This document shows positions 6,861 to 60,468 of a stretch of 64,000 bases of DNA, in pieces. The translations under genes and the position numbers were made by a program. Within the stretch, counting starts at the first letter, position 1. Each line of letters starts with the position of its first letter. This stretch comes from Octopus bimaculoides (taxonomy: Eukaryota), in NCBI RefSeq assembly GCF_001194135.2, contig NC_068983.1:146198374-146262373 (forward strand). The letters run 5' to 3'. The notes under the pieces are model-generated. The model did not search any database and was not told where the DNA came from. It saw nothing but the letters and a program-made list of their open reading frames with translations.

Positions 6861-7104
6861 ATCACTTTTAGGTGATTTTCAACCAGCACATGAAGTTAAG
6901 CCTAGAAGGTCTCTCTACATGCTAGAAATAACCAAATCTTTAAAAAAAAAATTTATAATTTCACGTAAACAAAAACGGAAATCGCGGTTGTAAAAATAGA
7001 AACATTTATTTACCAAAATTCTAATTTTTAAGTAAACAAAATATAATCAGTCGAAAATAAGTAAGTAGAATAGAATAAATTTTTAAATACTGATTTTTCT
7101 GCGA

Positions 7105-7455
7105 CAAAAAATTCTTCAAGGCGGTGTCCCAGCATGGCTGCAGTCTAATAACTGTAACAAGTAAAAAAAATTTTTAACTTCTGGCGTCGATACATCTGAT
7201 AAAAATTCTTCAAGGTGGTGCCCCAACATGGCTGCAGTCAAATAACTGCAACAAGTAAGAATAAAAAAAATTCTAGCGGCGATACGTTCGACTAAAATTT
7301 CTTCAAGGCAGTGCCCCAGCATGGCCACAATGTAATGACTGAAACAAGTAAAAGGTGAAAAAAACAAACCGAAAAATGTAACCATGGGTCTTTTATCCAC
7401 TTTCACACTTTTACTATGGCGCTTTTGTCCGAAGGACTTTTGTCCTAAACATCCA
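7105..7455 (+). mobile_element. Composite repeat: 3 tandem SINE-B tail units plus GG(G/A)CTTTTGTCC subterminal repeats
   Basis: The unit AAAATTCTTCAAGG(C/T)GGTG.CCCAGCATGGC.GCAGTC is repeated 3 times, followed by the same tail seen at 17580-17720. Confidence 0.75.
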
Positions 7456-10870: not shown

Positions 10871-11540
10871 CCCGTGGAAATCTTTAGTCCCACTCAGTTT
10901 TATAAAAATAAGTTATTAGTATTATTTTATTTCAAAATATTCTGTAAACTATATCGTCAACATGCGTTCAGAGTCGGAGCCCGATTGTAGTCCAGCTTAT
11001 TAATACTAGTCCTGATTAATAAAATTAGTGCAATATTTTAACACTAAGGACTCATAATAGGTATCACAATAGGACTCTACATTATCTCTATCCGGCTCAC
11101 GAGAATTAATTTATGCTTCAGTTTAGCTCACAAAAGTTAAACAAGTTTGATACCTCTGCAGTAAAGTGTGGTTTGAGAAAGATTTGTTAGGTCAAACGGC
11201 CATGTATAAGCTCTGTCAATGCGTCTTTTGTTCACACTCAAGTCAGCTCTACTTCCATTTGCTTTAATCACCACGATCAAACCGTGCTGGAGTACCGCCT
11301 GTGGTTAAAGGTATTCAACCATAACCATCCTGACTTTTTTATGTCTCAAACTACATTGTTTATCTTTTTTTTTAAAACAATTAATAGGGTGTAGCTTGAA
11401 GGCGATATGGCCATATTTCTAACAGGTCAGCGATCATATATTGGCACCCTCATCACGCCTGTCTGAAGTCTCTGGTGGTAACCATGATGTAGGAGAGCGA
11501 GAACTTTATTCGAAAGTGACAGTTGTTGCTCCTTTATAAT

Positions 11541-12309
11541 TGTAGCATGTCTGTATAAGCATAGCTTAAAACACATTTTTAATCTCAGGTAGGCTCAAAC
11601 GACACTAAAAGTTTATAGCTCAATTCAGCCTGTGATTGACTGAATAAACTAGCTCCCTCTGACAGGCGCTCTCTGCTACGTCAGATTGCCACCATGTTTA
11701 ATTGAGTTCCTTGAACTCATTGTCTCACTACTCTAAAGGACTCTCGGCATGCAGTTTTGCTTTATCGCGTTAACTCTGGCTTCTCTCACACAAGAACATC
11801 CTTCTTCCACGTGCACCGGCAGTATAGACCAAACTCAATGCCGTTATCTTATGCTAACTAGAAATACTTCTATCAAGTCTCTTATATACACAAAGTAGGT
11901 ACTACTAAAGCAGCGCGAACCCGAACGCGCTGCTTTAGTAGTACCCACAAAGTATAACTAATGCTTTCACGCATTCAATCATTCACCGTTACCAAGCTAC
12001 AGACATCTCTATAAAACATTAACATTGAACGTAACCCACACTGCTGTGAATAAACTTTACTACCAATCATCGTCAAGTTTGTCCATCTATTTCTGCATAC
12101 CAACCAATGTTGAAGTCCGTCTGTCTTTGTATACCACCAAATACCTATCGAACAGAGTTGGCGACCTGTGTCTGTCACACACACACTGCTATCAACAACT
12201 ACCGTCGCCGGCATCGTCATCTTCAACCAACAACTGTGGAGTCAACATAACCAACGGACAACGTTAAGGTGGTGGTATCAACAGACCACCACACTGATGA
12301 CATCTTACG
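11541..12309 (+). mobile_element. Probable solo LTR, copy 1
   Basis: Colinear with 25165-25882 (roughly 70-75% identical by eye). It starts TGTAG and ends CTTACG (CA in copy 2), with a TATA-like TATATA near 11883 and AATAAA near 12048. No TSD confirmed. Confidence 0.5.
11898..11945. mobile_element. 48-bp TIR-only micro-transposon with 9-bp TSD
   Basis: GGTACTACTAAAGCAGCGCG-AACCCGAA-CGCGCTGCTTTAGTAGTACC is flanked by CACAAAGTA on both sides (11889-11897 and 11946-11954). It is absent from the paralogous site at 25534-25542. Confidence 0.85.
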
Positions 12310-13164: not shown

Positions 13165-14368
13165 TCTCTGTGATGTAACTAAATGAGATTTATTTTTCAA
13201 AATAGTCCCTCTTGCATCCACATACGTCATCAGTGTTGCAGTGCTTGGATCCCATTGCTGAAGAAGCTTTCATCCTGTTGGTCAAAAATCATCACCAGCA
13301 GATATGACCTCATCATTGCGATACTGGTTCTCAGCTAAGTTTTTTTTTCAAGTTGGGCAACAGATGATAGTCAGATGGGGCCAAATCAGGGGAATATGGA
13401 GGGTGATCAACCAGTTCAAAACCAGTCACGCACAACAGCCATTGAAACCAAGAACTTGTGTGCTGGGACACTGTCCTGATAAAACATGAGCCCTTTCGTC
13501 ACTTTTCCTGGGCGTTTGGTCTTGATAACCTTTCGTAACTGTCTCAGCAAGTTGGCATTGTGCTCTCCATTAATGGTGTGACCCTTTTGAAGATAGTCCA
13601 ATAAACACAATGCCTTTTGGATCCCCCCCAAAACAGGCCATCACCTTCTCGGTAGGTGAAACGACTTTGACCTTCCTTGAAGCAGGTGAGGAGGTATGTT
13701 TTCACTGCATGGATCGTTTTTTTTTTGTTTTTTGTTTTGTTTTTTTTTTGTCTCTGGTTCAAAGTGATAAGGCCAACACTCATCTTGGGTTAGGAAACGT
13801 TCAAGGAGACCATCCGGATCTGCTTCAAACGATGTCAGATTTTTCTGCGGTGTGATCAGCCTGGTGCGCTTTTAATTAGGTGTCAAAAGACGTGGTATCC
13901 ACCGACCTAATAGCATTGGCTATTTGATTTATTGTCAATCGCCTGTCATCCATCTGCACGTAGTGAACCCAATCAATGTTTTTATCGGTAGTGGCAGTTG
14001 TAGAACGTTCAAACTTTGGGTCACCTTCAAGACTCTCCCATCCCCTCCTAAATTCAGCTGCTCACTTTTGCACTATTGATAAAGCTGAGCATCATCACCT
14101 AATTTAGCAACCATGTCAGCATGAATGTCTTTGGAAGCTTAACTGTTTTTTCTGCAGGTACTTGATAACACAACGATGCGAAATTTTGTCCATTATCAAG
14201 AAAAGTAGTTACTACTTATTTTTGACGTCTTCTTTGAACAGTGACATGTCAGTTTACCTGAAGAGAAACAATGCAGTTATTAATAAGAAGGGTTGAAATC
14301 AATGTATGCAAGGTTTCACTGCTCTAGTATCCATCTTTCATAGTCGGCCTATGAACTTTTTAGCCCAG
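13165..14368 (-). mobile_element. Mariner (DD34D) transposon, defective
   Basis: The N-terminal HTH MDKISHRCVIKYLQKK starts at ATG 14193. Catalytic-domain pieces include LLDYLQKGHTINGEHNANLLRQLRK, MFYQDSVPAH and HPPYSPDLAPSDYHL. One TIR-like end CTGGGCTAAAAAGTTCATAGGCCGAC lies at about 14343-14368; the other end is missing. Confidence 0.92.
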
Positions 14369-16981: not shown

Positions 16982-17447
16982 CCCGCAGCCTGTGTTGTGC
17001 CCCGCACCGCTACTTCAACGTCCCTTACGGCAATTTCAAGCGATATGCCCAGTCTGCCTGCACCGGTAGCAAAGGAGTCCGGGCTCCGTCTCCGTGCAGT
17101 CCCTTGCCATATACGGTCCCTGGCACTTAAAGCACCGGCCCATGAACGGTCGCTGTCCACTCCACGGTAGTTTTCTTCTCACTGGTCGTTGCATTACGTC
17201 GCGGGCTTCCGCTGCTGCCATTGCCACTGCCTTCCACCCGGTGTCTTGTGTCGATACGCGGGCTTGAGCGCATCGCTCATCGCCGTTTTCTCGCTATCTG
17301 GCAGTTGTTGCAGTCGCATCAATATGTCGTCGTGAAAGCCATTTGCGAAGGCCAGACGTGCTGCCTTCTCTAGACCATCCCCTGTAAAATTGGACAGTAT
17401 GGCCAGTCTCCGAGCCACCGCAGCATACTCATCGACCTGTTCCCCTA
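16982..17447 (-). mobile_element. Gypsy-like gag fragment with two CCHC zinc knuckles (frameshifted)
   Basis: GEQVDEYAAVARRLA...LAFANGF, then CFKCQGPYMARDC and CYRCRQTGHIA*NC (CX2CX4HX4C with a probable CGA>TGA stop). Much more GC-rich than the flanks. Confidence 0.8.
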
Positions 17448-17720
17448 AAAATTCTTCAAGGTGGTGCCCCAGCATGGCCGCAGTCTAACAAGTAAAAAAG
17501 TAAAAAATTCTGGCGTCGATACGTTCAACTAAAAATTCTTCAAGGCGGTGCCCCAGCATGACTGCAGTCTAATGACTGAAACAAGTAAAAGGTGAAAAAC
17601 TAATCGAAAATTATAACCATGGGGCTTTTGTCCACTTTCACACTTTAACTATGGAGCTTTTGTCCTAGGGGACTTTTGTCTTAGAGGGTTTTTGTTCTAA
17701 GGGGCTTTTGTCCTACACAC
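17448..17720 (+). mobile_element. Composite repeat: 2 tandem SINE-B tail units plus GG(G/A)CTTTTGTCC repeats
   Basis: Homologous to 7105-7455. Confidence 0.75.
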
Positions 17721-18690: not shown

Positions 18691-18967
18691 GAAGTGTTAT
18701 TGTTAGATAATAAATTATTTAAAATAGTAAATGTAACTTTTTGCAAGCCAGAATTATGTGTTTCTGTGTTTTCATTTTCGTTCTCTGATTCCAACCATGA
18801 TCCGCCTGACTTTTTGTATTTCAGGGACTATATTGGGATCTTTTTGGTTTGACGGGCAACATTTTTCATTACTGTTTTATGTAGTGTGTTTGGTACCGAA
18901 ACACTTTCAAACTTCGTATACTTGTATATTTTGTATTATAGAACAGATAAAAAATGTTGTATTCGAA

Positions 18968-19477
18968 GTTATTTCATGTAAAAAGTTGTCGTATTTCGGT
19001 AATTTCAACCAATCACTGACGTCTATTGAGGTGAAAACAATTAATGGCATGGAATGTAAACAACGGTGTCATGGGATCTTTTCCCTTGAATAAAATTAGT
19101 GCCGTTGTTTGTCAACAACAACTACCCATGTTACTCTTATTTATGACATTGTTCGTGCGTTTGTACTGGTTTTAGCTTTAGGGTTTTAGGGTTAGGGTTN
19201 NNNNNNNNNNNNNNNNNNNNNNNNNNNNNNNNNNNNNNNNNNNNNNNNNNNNNNNNNNNNNNNNNNNNNNNNNNNNNNNNNNNNNNNNNNNNNNNNNNNN
19301 NNNNNNNNNNNNNNNNNNNNNNNNNNNNNNNNNNNNNNNNNNNNNNNNNNNNNNNNNNNNNNNNNNNNNNNNNNNNNNNNNNNNTGTTTATAAAAAGAGC
19401 ACTAACTGTATTCAGCTGAATAGACGTCAGTGATTGGTTGAAATTACAGAAATATGACAACTTTAACATGAAATAAC
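18968..19477. repeat. 60-bp inverted repeat enclosing TTAGGG-like repeats and a gap
   Basis: Arms at 18968-19027 and 19419-19477 are about 90% identical. TTTAGGG-TTTTAGGG-TTAGGG-TT runs into the Ns at 19200. Confidence 0.8.
19200..19384. other. Assembly gap (185 N)
   Basis: Run of N. Confidence 1.
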
Positions 19478-20628
19478 TTATTAAGAACTAATTTTTGTTA
19501 AGAAGGCTAAGAGAAAACGATGTTTTATATGACACATTCTACCAATATCCCAAGTTTGAAAGTGTTTCGTTAAGAAAACAAGTGTTGCCCGTCAAACCAA
19601 AAAGATCCCTATATTGCCCGAAATGCTCTTACCTTAAAACAGTAGGGAGTGATTTGAGGGGCGTTTGGCTACTCATGCAGGTTGAGCGACCCTGTTAAAA
19701 CTCACTCTTTGGTGCAGATGGCTCATTCTCAGCGGTGGAGGAAAGAGGAGATGGTGACAATCATGCCCTTTTCAGGTACTTTAGTGTAGTTATTTAAAGT
19801 CAAATGGCTCTAATTAAAGTATCGAAATGTTGTTACGGTCTTAGCTCCATGGGAATTTAAGTCTTATTTTAGAGTCTATAGGGAATTCGCTGGAAAATAT
19901 GCTAAGAAACATATTGAAGGTATTACTCAGATATTCTTTGAAGTGGCAAATATTAATACTTCCGCCTTGCCAACAACTTTCAGTACATTTGAATTATCAA
20001 ACAGCAAATTAAATAAAACATTAACAAATATTTACACACATATAAGCATACACAGGCTGAAAAGTTTACACACACGTTACGTTTATGAGCCAACAAGGGA
20101 GTCTCTACAGTAAACGGTCGCTTGGTTTCTAAAAGTAGCAACCATATTCTAACTTAAAAAATAGAAAGACACAGTGATCAATGTAGCTTGAGATATATAA
20201 AAGAAAAAAGATAGGATGGCCGTGCCTGGAATATCTTTGATGACAGGTTTCCTGAATCTTTGTTAACTTGAGTCTAAACAACATTTAGGTAATCTCAGCT
20301 TTTGGAACCCGAGTAGCTCTTCGGCTCGCCAGCTCCTGTCAAACCGTCAGCCCATGCCAGCATGGAAAACAAGACATTAAATGATAATAATGATGATGGT
20401 GATGATACATACATAATACATACATACATACATATTAGTGTGGATTTTAATCATTAATTCTGTGTTGCTAGTTTATAATATATAAACTACATGTGAAGAC
20501 AAGAATGACCACGCTAATATTTTTTGTTTTTTTACATTTTTTTTATTAACCCATTTCATTTATATTTACATGTTGGCTATGTGACACAAGCGTACTGTGT
20601 CGTTATGTTTTCAAACAGGAGATAAGCA

Positions 20629-21517
20629 CGAGGTCTGATCAATAAGTATCAGGACTGTTACCATAGTAACGAAGATAAAGCACGCAGAGTGAAGCTGCTT
20701 GGCAAAGATTGACCTTGAACTCTGCTGTGCATGCGCACTAAGCTTTAATGTTCTAGCTCACTTCCACTGTTTACAGCAATGCTTGGAAGGAAGGTGTGTA
20801 GTGTGTGATCGTCGCATTGACTATGACAGAGAAAGTTGTCATGACGGTACCAGCTCAGAGGCCTACACAATGTTGCAGAAAGTGTATGGAGAGGAGTGTA
20901 TGAGCCGCACACAAGTGTACAAGTAGTTCAGACATTTCCAAGATGGCCGAAAAAAATGTCAATATTGACGAATATTCTAGGAGACCTGCAACCAGCAGAA
21001 CTGAGAAAAACATCTTGGATGTGCGTGCAGTTGTGAGAGGAAATCATCAAATCACTATCCGTGATTTGAGGATGTGCAGATTAGTTACAGTTCAGTTTAG
21101 TCCATTATCACTGAAGATATTGGTATGAGACACGTGTCTGCTAAGTTTGTGCCAAAACTGCTTTCAGCTGACCAAAGAGACACTCGGGTTTCAGCTGCAC
21201 AAGATCACCTTGATTGTGGCGAGAACGATGAAAAAACTTTTGGAAAACTTTGCTTTGAGCAGGTATCACCAAGCTTTTGGCAAAATTTGATGCAAATTCT
21301 CTGTTCAACTTTCTTTGTCATGGTAAATGTGATGATAACACACTACACATGTTCCTTTCAAGCACTGCTGTAAACAGCAGAAGTGAGTTAGAATGTCAAA
21401 ACTTTGTACACATACACAGCAGGGTTAAAGGTCAATCTGTGCCAAGTGACTTCCGTCTGTGTGTTTTAGCTTCGTTACTATGACAACAGTCCGGATACTT
21501 ATTGATCTGACCACATG
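20629..21517 (+). mobile_element. Internally deleted mariner with long (about 200 bp) terminal inverted repeats
   Basis: The left end CGAGGTCTGATCAATAAGTATCAGGACTG mirrors the right end CAGTCCGGATACTTATTGATCTGACC. Internal HTH pieces read AYTMLQKVYGEECMSRTQVYK and HVSAKFVPKLLS; there is no DDD domain. Confidence 0.85.
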
Positions 21518-23936: not shown

Positions 23937-24837
23937 ACAGGGTGCAGAAGACATTTGAGAACAGATTTATGTTACCCCTGCTGGCGACAAAGGGACTCTC
24001 ACTCAGAGTAAAAGGCAGACTGTATGACGCATGCGTACGAACAACCATGCTACATGGCAGTGAAACATGGGCTGTAACTGCTGAGGACATACGTAAGCTC
24101 GCAAGGAATGAAGCCAGTATGCTCCGTTGGATGTGTAATGTCAATGTGAATACCCGTCAGAGTGTAAGTATCTTGAGAGAAAAGCTGAACATTAGAAGCA
24201 TCAGTTGTGGCGTGCAAGAGAGACGATTGCGCTGGTATGGACATGTGGTGAGAATGGAGGAGGATNNNNNNNNNNNNNNNNNNNNNNNNNNNNNNNNNNN
24301 NNNNNNNNNNNNNNNNNNNNNNNNNNNNNNNNNNNNNNNNNNNNNNNNNNNNNNNNNNNNNNNNNNNNNNNNNNNNNNNNNNNNNNNNNNNNNNNNNNNN
24401 NNNNNNNNNNNNNNNNNNNNNNNNNNNNNNNNNNNNNNNNNNNNNNNNNNNNNNNNNNNNNNNNNNNNNNNNNNNNNNNNNNNNNNNNNNNNNNNNNNNN
24501 NNNNNNNNNNNNNNNNNNNNNNNNNNNNNNNNNNNNNNNNNNNNNNNNNNNNNNNNNNNNNNNNNNNNNNNNNNNNNNNNNNNNNNNNNNNNNNNNNNNN
24601 NNNNNNNNNNNNNNNNNNNNNNNNNNNNNNNNNAAAGACACCATTTCGAGCGTGGCCGTTTTCGTGCGGGTGACACGTAAAAGCACCCACTACACTCTCT
24701 GAGTGGTTGGCGTTAGGAAGGGCATCCAGCTGTAGAAACTCTGCCAAATCAGACTGGAGCCTGGTGTTGCCATCCGGTTTCACCAGTCCTCAGTCAAATC
24801 GTCCAACCCATGCTAGCATGGAAAGCGGACGTTAAAC

Positions 24838-24871: not shown

Positions 24872-25164
24872 TTCTTTAAAAACAAACAAAAAAAAAAGAT
24901 ATATAATAACAGATAATAATTTTCTTACCAAAAAATGCTATGAGGATAAAAATAAACCTTCTTTTCTATAACATTTTTCAATAAAGCTACCTTCAGCTTC
25001 AGTAACTGCTTTTATACGAGATCTAGATTGTCTACATGTGCTTGAACCAAGTGGTCCTGGTTCATTCTGAATGTTTCTCTGATTATTGTGGCTTTCAAAG
25101 AATCTTTGGTGTAATGTGTGTGTTCATTGACCTCTCTCTCAACAGCACTCAGCATGTAATAGTT

Positions 25165-25882
25165 TGTAGTATGTCTGTATTAGCTTAGTTAAAACATGCA
25201 TTTTTGGACTTCAAAGTAGGCTCAAATGACACTATCAGTTTACAGCTTTATTCAGTCTGTGATTGGCTGAATTAACTAGTTCCCTTGAACAGGCGTTCTC
25301 TGCTATGTCTGATTGTCACTTACATAATGTGCCTGCCACCATGATTTAATCGAGTTCCTTATCTCGCTTCTCTAAAGGACTCCTGGCATGCAGTTTTGTT
25401 CTATCATGTTAACGCTAGTCTCTCACACACAAGAACAGTCTTCGTCCACGTGCGCCAGCAGATTTGACCAAACTCAATGCCGTCATCTTTCACACTTTTC
25501 TAGAAACACCTCTATCAAGTTTCCTTCTATATATACAAAGTACAACTAATGTCTTCATGCATTCATTCATTTACTGCTAACACACCAGAGACATCTCTAT
25601 ACAGAACTCTATGCAAGGAAAATCATGTGTAATCCACTGCTACAATAAAACTTTATAATCTTAAAGTGAGTTGTATATCACCACACGGCTATCAAGCACA
25701 TGAACATAGTTGGCAACATCTGTCAGCCACCACTGCTATCGACAATTACCATCGCTAATATCATTATCTTCAACCAATGATCATTGAGTCAACCCGACGT
25801 GAAAACAACTTTTGTTGAACTAATAACCAACAGACTATGTTAAGATGGTGGTACCCACAAACCACCACACTGGTGACCTTCA
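25165..25882 (+). mobile_element. Probable solo LTR, copy 2 (lacks the 48-bp insert)
   Basis: Colinear with 11541-12309, with TG...CA ends and AATAAA near 25585. Confidence 0.5.
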
Positions 25883-26957: not shown

Positions 26958-27191
26958 TGTCTACTTGAATGCTGGAAAATATGGTAATGTTGAAAATCCC
27001 AACATGAAAATGAAGGTTAATGACTCCAAAATCTTAAACATCATCATCATCGTTTAACGTCCGCTTTCCATGCTAGCATGGAAAGCGGATGTTAAACGAT
27101 GATGATGATGTTTAAGATTTTGGGGTCATTAACCTTTATTTTCATGTTGGGATTTTCAACATTACCATATTTTCCAGCATTCAAGTAGACA
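26958..27191. repeat. 234-bp near-perfect palindrome (117-bp arms, no loop)
   Basis: The axis lies between 27074 and 27075, inside CCATGCTAGCATGG. There are 3 mismatched pairs (27012/27137, 27025/27124, 27059/27090). Confidence 0.95.
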
Positions 27192-33429: not shown

Positions 33430-33633
33430 TGATTTCAAACTTTGACACAAGGCCAGCAAGTTCGGGGAGGGAGTAAGTCGATTACACCGACCCCAGTATT
33501 CGATTGGTACTTACTTCATCAACCCCGAGGAGATGAAAGGCAAAGTCGACCTCAGCGGAATTTTGAACTCAGAATGTAAAGACGGGCGAAATGCCGTCAA
33601 GCATCGGTATACTAACGATTCTGTCAGCTCGTC
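33430..33633 (-). mobile_element. SINE family A
   Basis: Reverse complement of GAGCTG.CAGAATCGTTAG...CTGAGTTCAAA.TTCCGC.GAGGTCGACTTTGCCTTTCATC. Other copies lie near 30780-30915(-), 33280-33420(+), 37158-37370(+) and 41235-41468(+). Confidence 0.85.
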
Positions 33634-60444: not shown

Positions 60445-60468
60445 TCTCTCTCTCACTCNNNNNNNNNN

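Follow-up and report, generated by a model that had tools for sequence, protein, structure and literature searches.

The locus and its palindrome

The window considered here, that is, the whole 64,000-nucleotide stretch of Octopus bimaculoides DNA that was analyzed, has ~36% GC and no long open reading frames (ORFs), and contains tRNA-derived SINE-like repeats, TA/GA microsatellites, and three N gaps (19200-19384, 24266-24633, and 60459-60468). Its repeats are 88-91% identical to an O. bimaculoides contig and ~70-77% identical to an O. sinensis contig, and a LINE fragment at 23942-24265 has an O. bimaculoides protein as its nearest named relative. As for mobile-element proteins, its ORFs encode only part of a reverse transcriptase (RT), remnants of mariner, and a zinc knuckle, with no Merlin or MULE transposase among them. 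The features that matter for the hairpin under study, including the paralogous site used for comparison, are the following:

11540-12301, plus strand: host repeat copy 1, an unclassified dispersed repeat of ~760 bp, with the insertion
11889-11897, no strand: left copy of the target site duplication (TSD), CACAAAGTA, 9 bp, identical to 11946-11954
11898-11917, plus strand: left arm, GGTACTACTAAAGCAGCGCG, read as the outer 20 nt of a Merlin-type terminal inverted repeat (TIR)
11918-11925, plus strand: the "8-nt spacer" AACCCGAA, in the simplest reading positions 21-28 of the left TIR
11926-11945, minus strand: right arm, CGCGCTGCTTTAGTAGTACC, which mirrors the left arm as its exact reverse complement; read as the terminal 20 nt of the right TIR, without the inner motif
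11946-11954, no strand: right copy of the TSD, CACAAAGTA, 9 bp, identical to 11889-11897
25164-25877, plus strand: host repeat copy 2, the paralogue without insert (75.8% identity without gaps)
25534-25542, no strand: the paralogous "empty site", a single TACAAAGTA

The palindrome at 11898-11945 is perfect (20 + 8 + 20 bp, 48 bp in total) and lies inside perfect 9-bp direct repeats; since neither the arms nor the direct repeats extend by one base on either side, their lengths are exactly 20 and 9 bp. The first-pass annotation, which had described a 48-bp unit with two perfect 20-bp TIRs and a 9-bp TSD, is confirmed on this point at 11889-11954, where we found no mismatch. Its count of three CpGs per arm has to be lowered: there are two per arm plus one in the spacer, hence five in 48 bp, which corresponds to an observed/expected ratio of 1.43 versus 0.42 for the window. 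Both arms start with GGTACT, and thus with 5'-GG. Small and non-coding, with its 20-bp TIRs, its 9-bp TSD, and no gene space, the unit has the size and structure of a MITE.

Within the window, the hairpin stands alone. The arm 20-mer has two sites in the 64 kb, which are the two hairpin arms, even when up to 3 mismatches are allowed (0 expected), and none of the 12-mers of the arm occurs elsewhere in the window. When the window was scanned for TIR pairs with flanking direct repeats, the hairpin came first by a wide margin and was the only candidate to combine a long perfect TIR with a long TSD. Folded as single-stranded DNA, it reaches -25.1 kcal/mol (z = -9.8). Matches to Rfam microRNA models span 11889-11953 on the minus strand, all below threshold; the best of them, mir-4703, scores 33 bits versus a gathering score of 88, and we rejected the reading as a microRNA precursor, the similarity being that of hairpins in general.

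Insertion into the host repeat and its relative age

The hairpin is a foreign sequence, inserted with a 9-bp target duplication into the ~760-bp dispersed repeat. The BLAST alignment of the two host copies is broken exactly at 11897 and 11947, and both pieces lead to the single TACAAAGTA at 25534-25542; the 9-mer is doubled around the insert and single in the paralogue, which bears out the insertion with target site duplication that had been proposed. The "empty site" invoked at the same time is indeed a single 9-mer with no insert, but it belongs to a paralogue (75.8% identical) and not to an allele or orthologue.

Of 657 aligned positions, 159 are different between the two host copies (JC distance 0.29), which are also separated by several other indels. 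If the insert were as old as the split of these copies, 0 mismatches in 29 pairs (20 in the arm and 9 in the TSD) would be observed with P = 3e-4. Because of these perfect pairs, of the C shared by both 9-mers of copy 1 at TSD position 1 (T in copy 2), and of the five intact CpGs, we conclude that the sequence was inserted into copy 1. The insert clearly postdates the split of these copies: 0 mismatches in 29 pairs imply a pairwise divergence <9.8% (95%), that is, less than ~40% of the age of the host-copy split. The event can therefore be called recent, as the first-pass annotation did, in comparison with that split, but in this relative sense only, the bound on divergence being ~10%. We do not retain the "still active" transposase that was deduced from the same observation, since 29 pairs with 0 mismatches only limit divergence to < ~10%.

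The host repeat itself had been taken for a long terminal repeat (LTR) with a TATA box next to the insertion. It has no LTR hallmarks, and this "TATA box of LTR" is thus unsupported: the copies are 13.6 kb apart and 76% identical, their boundaries show no matching flanking TSD and no PBS-like sequence, and the 12.9 kb between them contain no set of RT, integrase, and protease, with only mariner remnants, a minus-strand zinc-knuckle ORF, and a LINE fragment in that interval. The TATATA that adjoins the insertion site is plain AT-rich sequence.

Similarity of the arms to Merlin termini

Merlin elements are described as having 5'-GG termini, 8- or 9-bp TSDs, and TIRs of 24-462 bp, and O. bimaculoides is reported to have an unusually high number of Merlin protein hits, namely 191 (PMC8101967). 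Octopus Merlin proteins from the supplement of that study served as queries for relatives and for the loci that encode them, and the Merlin loci that we examined include two from octopods and 80 further metagenomic relatives. For the octopus Merlin proteins P0032 and P0088 no gene record was found, and the O. bimaculoides Merlin copy that was recovered (L002) has lost its ends. The O. sinensis Merlin of VCDQ01004827.1 (L003, 9415-11751) is a gene with a PF12762 (DDE_Tnp_IS1595) domain between 42-bp imperfect TIRs:

L003 9415-9456: left TIR, GGTACTATTTAAGAAGAGTG..., longer stretch GGTACTATTTAAGAAGAGTGGTCCCGGT...
L003 11710-11751: right TIR, GGTGCTACTTGAGAACAATG..., longer stretch GGTGCTACTTGAGAACAATGGTCACGGT...

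The hairpin arm is identical to the left TIR of L003 at 15 of 20 positions, with the match starting at the very terminus and running in the same direction, and to the TIR of a second Merlin (L010) at 14 of 20. The latter belongs to a complete 1,059-bp element found in four sequencing runs (L008-L011), with perfect 29-bp TIRs, GGTACTTCTACAGAACAGCCCACCCATGG, that start with GGTACTTCTACAG... Among metagenomic relatives, five (L020, L029, L042, L060, and L091) start with GGTACTT and L016 with GGTGCTT, and more distant ones with GGCGCT or GGTCAC. The terminal motif that the hairpin arm has in common with the TIRs of its Merlin relatives can be written GGTACT.CT..AG.

How specific is this motif? In the window, GGTACTNCTNNAG is found at the two hairpin ends only, the right one at 11933-11945 (0.04 expected), and among 11 loci it is found only at the ends of the Merlin elements L008-L011. 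A motif built from L010 and L003 alone, the hairpin being left out, fits the hairpin at 12 of its 15 specified positions, a match with a chance of ~1.2e-5 per position, for which 1.5 matches would be expected over the whole window. Since the arm matches Merlin TIR termini and since these tests of motif specificity point the same way, we favor Merlin over Mutator. Of the two candidate superfamilies put forward in the first-pass annotation, Merlin is in this respect strengthened, as the arm aligns with the TIRs of DDE_Tnp_IS1595-encoding elements precisely from the end and correctly oriented. Overall, we consider the hairpin to be a Merlin-derived insertion with a probability of roughly 0.85, in which case the activity of a Merlin family postdates the divergence of the host repeat. 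Given that the nearest TIR is only 75% identical, the parent family itself was not found.

Several other matches were encountered along the way. Window 20-mers with at least 15 of 20 positions identical to the L003 terminus (3933, 6576, 10179, and 47898) were rejected as AT-rich chance matches without a partner. At 33506-33527, GGTACTTACTTCATCAACCCCG fits a Merlin end loosely (GGTACT...CCCG), yet it lies inside an abundant SINE-like repeat (D9) and is a false positive, a case that calls for caution when octopus DNA is scanned for Merlin ends. As for the compact 1,059-bp Merlin, L008-L011 are Logan contigs from SRR22455136/38/40/41 with an identical 299-aa transposase in the four runs, and the element looks recently active. 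In a further relative (L006, 5045-8012), the 3' part of the Merlin and its flank, including the 8-bp TSD, occur three times in a row at intervals of 1,473 bp, as a tandem duplication that takes in a transposon end.

A probable inner TIR motif on one side of the hairpin

The similarity to Merlin may continue beyond the perfect arms. At TIR positions 19-26, (C)ACCCGAA is present in both TIRs of L042, L091, and L060, and L029 has CACCCGA; at positions 21-26, L010 has CACCCA and the left TIR of L003 GTCCCG, with CCC at 23-25 in both. Counted from the left end, the center of the hairpin reads AACCCGAA at positions 21-28; counted from the right end it reads TTCGGGTT, which does not fit the motif. 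Over the whole window and both strands, ACCCGAA has two occurrences. Because the spacer AACCCGAA looks like positions 21-28 of a left TIR, the right TIR appears truncated, and the earlier description of the unit as "only two TIRs plus spacer" would have to give way to one with a shortened right TIR. In the simplest parse of the sequence, positions 1-28 of a left TIR would be joined directly to positions 20-1 of a right TIR, and the unit would be an internal-deletion derivative; this parse is based on a 7-nt motif that was noticed after the fact.

The lengths are to be read in the same light: the perfect inverted repeat is 20 bp long, and the left end counts 28 nt with the spacer and the right end 20 nt, for a described range of 24-462 bp. 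The 20-nt arms are shorter than every Merlin TIR measured here (29-120 nt in the relatives).

TSD length and target sequence

All five relatives with readable TSDs (L005, L006, L015, L049, and L091) have TSDs of 8 bp, namely CAAAAGTT, GGACTTTG, AAAGTACG, GACCCTTT, and GGTCATCC. The idea that a 9-bp TSD fits Merlin thus holds insofar as 9 bp is inside the 8-9-bp range of the superfamily (PMC8101967), but the relatives that were measured make 8 bp in 5/5 cases. An 8-bp reading of the hairpin TSD would imply that one end of the element carries an additional, unpaired base, and we kept 9 bp.

Regarding the target sequence, AAAGT occurs in four of the six TSDs of the clade, those of the hairpin (11889-11897), of L005 (1555-1562), of L006 (2062-2069, as the reverse complement), and of L015 (2323-2330), and a fifth carries AAAGG. 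The chance that L005 and L006 both share one 5-mer with the hairpin TSD is ~1e-3, for a pattern that was noticed after the fact. Judging from these sequences, AAAGT may reflect a target site preference of this Merlin clade.

In-place deletion or mobile unit

Taken together, these features are best explained, as far as can be judged from sequence comparison, if the hairpin is a miniature internal-deletion derivative of a cut-and-paste transposon of the Merlin superfamily (IS1595-like, DDE). The deletion could have taken place at the site itself or before transposition, and we prefer the former, though as no more than an even bet. It would involve the insertion of a longer Merlin at this site, where staggered cleavage of the target and fill-in would produce the TSD. 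The element would later excise and leave a double-strand gap, whose repair from a sister or homologous copy by synthesis-dependent strand annealing would abort after 20-28 nt per end. The joining of the two short ends would then give TSD, both termini, and TSD, that is, a fixed remnant. Abortive gap repair followed by end joining is an accepted origin of deletion derivatives and of the founders of MITEs (PMC3814204). A dead remnant is in keeping with arms below the TIR lengths of Merlin and with the absence, on the right, of the inner motif present in both TIRs of relatives; because its right end is without this motif, such a remnant would probably no longer move. Deletion in place predicts a single copy, which need not be mobile. 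Against it, the site would have had to undergo first an insertion and then an excision with aborted repair, and both so recently that no mismatch has accumulated.

Alternatively, the 48-bp unit could have been formed elsewhere and mobilized here in trans by a Merlin transposase, as one member of a multi-copy family of micro-MITEs, an origin that we regard as possible but rather unlikely. It would require just one event at the locus, and the perfect TSD and TIRs are what a single recent transposition should leave, in an octopus that has many Merlin transposase genes. There is also a precedent for a unit made of TIRs only, MADE1, which is 80 bp long (two 37-bp TIRs plus 6 bp), has ~8,000 copies in human, and is reportedly favored as a substrate by the Hsmar1 transposase (PMC1784062, PMC5224488). 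However, the right arm is without the inner motif that relatives have in both TIRs, the 20-nt arms are below every described Merlin TIR, the 8 nt between the ends leave no room for a DNA loop in the synapsis of one element, and some transposases, such as Sleeping Beauty, mobilize MITE-like substrates poorly (PMC5224488). Moreover, neither the 64-kb window nor 29 kb of DNA from other octopod loci contain a second copy, a result that bounds the copy number at tens of thousands only.

Other searches for further copies also returned nothing. The 20-nt TIR has 0 exact matches in metagenome, prokaryote-genome, and viral contig collections, which do not include the host genome and are silent on copy number. 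A proxy at the protein level consisted in comparing the translations of the hairpin in its context (open in 4 of 6 frames) to 5.8 billion proteins, which gave 11 word-sharing candidates, none of them scoring. This proxy is weak because the collection covers the non-coding ORFs of octopus very sparsely: even an abundant octopus LINE fragment gave only a handful of matches. None of the 20 ORFs that adjoin the hairpin or lie within 10 kb of it has an exact match in the collection. When 316 kb of Merlin loci were scanned for very small TIR-TIR derivatives, only SINE-related inverted copies came up.

That the 48-bp unit belongs to a currently or recently mobile family, moved by a Merlin transposase despite one end limited to the outer 20 nt and a gap of 8 nt, is in our view doubtful. 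Such a unit would be the smallest TIR transposon described in eukaryotes, below the 80 bp of MADE1; 20 terminal nucleotides would be enough for the recognition of a Merlin end; and synapsis would proceed via ends located on different DNA molecules or via an extruded cruciform. We know of no experimental study of the end requirements of the Merlin transposase or of the biochemistry of Merlin transposition.

Origins outside Merlin

Mutator/MULE and Drosophila Foldback elements typically produce TSDs of 9 bp, and the hairpin could accordingly be an insertion of that kind, or another non-Merlin insertion with a 9-bp TSD, whose terminus resembles Merlin by coincidence. Its TSD of 9 bp is inside the 9-11-bp criterion for MULEs when the five measured Merlin relatives make 8-bp TSDs, and its foldback shape is consistent with such an origin. 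Still, the coincidence would have to extend to terminal and inner motifs that match DDE_Tnp_IS1595-encoding elements (chance rate ~1e-5 per position), 9-bp TSDs have been described for some Merlin families (PMC8101967), and no MULE-type sequence or domain was found among the ORFs of the window, so that this origin appears improbable to us.

An artefact of library or assembly, be it an adapter or tagmentation junction or a chimeric palindrome, would be another way to obtain a palindrome between short direct repeats, and the N gaps of the window do show that the assembly is a scaffolded draft. A 9-bp duplication is also what Tn5-type tagmentation produces. The hairpin arm, however, is not the Tn5 mosaic end nor, as far as we know, any adapter. 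Because motifs of natural Merlin elements, terminal as well as inner, are present in the insert and because its flanks are colinear with the paralogue, the nearest N gap being 7 kb away, we give an artefact very little credence.

Least probable of all, the hairpin and both 9-mers could be ancestral to the host repeat, copy 2 having lost them when the 9-mers recombined or slipped, for a single 9-mer is just what remains after a deletion between direct repeats of this length, other indels separate the copies, and the comparison relies on a single paralogue; but at 24% substitution divergence the perfect 20 arm and 9 TSD pairs have a 3e-4 chance, five CpGs are intact in a CpG-depleted genome, the arms bear a transposon-end motif, and position 1 is C in both 9-mers versus T in copy 2.

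Comparison with known elements

The hairpin resembles the Merlin elements L003 and L008-L010 by its 5'-GG, by GGTACT.CT..AG, and by an inner CCCG(AA) ~21-28 nt from the end; its TSD is in the 8-9-bp range of the superfamily, with an AAAGT core that recurs in the TSDs of 3 of 5 relatives, and the superfamily is abundant in the host lineage. Unlike its Merlin relatives, it has neither a transposase nor any internal sequence, its arms are 20 nt long instead of 29-120 nt, and its TSD 9 bp instead of 8 bp.

In architecture it recalls MADE1/MiHsmar1, likewise a palindrome of two TIRs and few bases (6 bp in MADE1, 8 in the hairpin), produced by internal deletion and able to form a stable hairpin. MADE1, however, is a Tc1/mariner element derived from the mariner Hsmar1, with a TA TSD, both 37-bp TIRs complete, and a proven multi-copy status, when the unit described here has one TIR apparently truncated and is 48 bp long versus 80 bp. 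A second parallel is provided by the abortive-gap-repair derivatives and large excision footprints of Ac/Ds, P, Tc1, and Mutator, as well as by the Ozma-derived MITEs of Aedes, in which the TSD and termini are kept and the interior is lost, with a junction between short stretches copied inward from each end; compared to these, the hairpin is extreme in size, with 20-28 nt per end. Finally, the 9-bp TSD and the palindromic foldback shape are shared with Mutator/MULE and Foldback elements, from which it differs by motifs that match Merlin and by the absence of an associated MULE transposase or MULE-type long TIR.

The hairpin would thus be a micro-element derived from Merlin in octopods, a lineage for which an unusual wealth of Merlin transposases had been reported before. 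If it were multi-copy, the unit would define the minimal cis requirements of Merlin and lower the size limit of MITEs. For annotation purposes, a Merlin clade in molluscs may be recognized by GGTACT.CT..AG, an inner (C)ACCCGAA, mostly 8-bp TSDs, and the recurrent target AAAGT.

Other repeats in the window

The window contains several further repeats. Between the host copies, mariner-type transposase remnants are found at 13419-13640 (minus strand) and 20943-21373 (plus strand), with a match to Pfam Transposase_1 at E = 2.7e-6, and include mariner-like N-terminal ORFs with a weak HTH_48 match. Zinc-knuckle Gag-like ORFs (17036-17475 on the minus strand) lie beside ~94-bp tandem repeats (7063-7435 and 17432-17670) that recur at a 10.2-kb spacing (families D6, D7, and D14). 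At 18833-19609, across the N gap 19200-19384, there is a foldback-like inverted repeat of ~775 bp with 27-nt perfect outer arms and a possible 6-bp TSD, TATATT, and members of its family also occur on an O. bimaculoides contig (L002, 5572-6284) at 88-91% identity. A perfect 54-nt inverted repeat, whose arms are 126 nt apart, is located at 26958-27191, and a 43-nt inverted match links 24808 and 27081; the inverted repeat and the match at 24808 probably represent a common octopus repeat that is present twice in inverted orientation.
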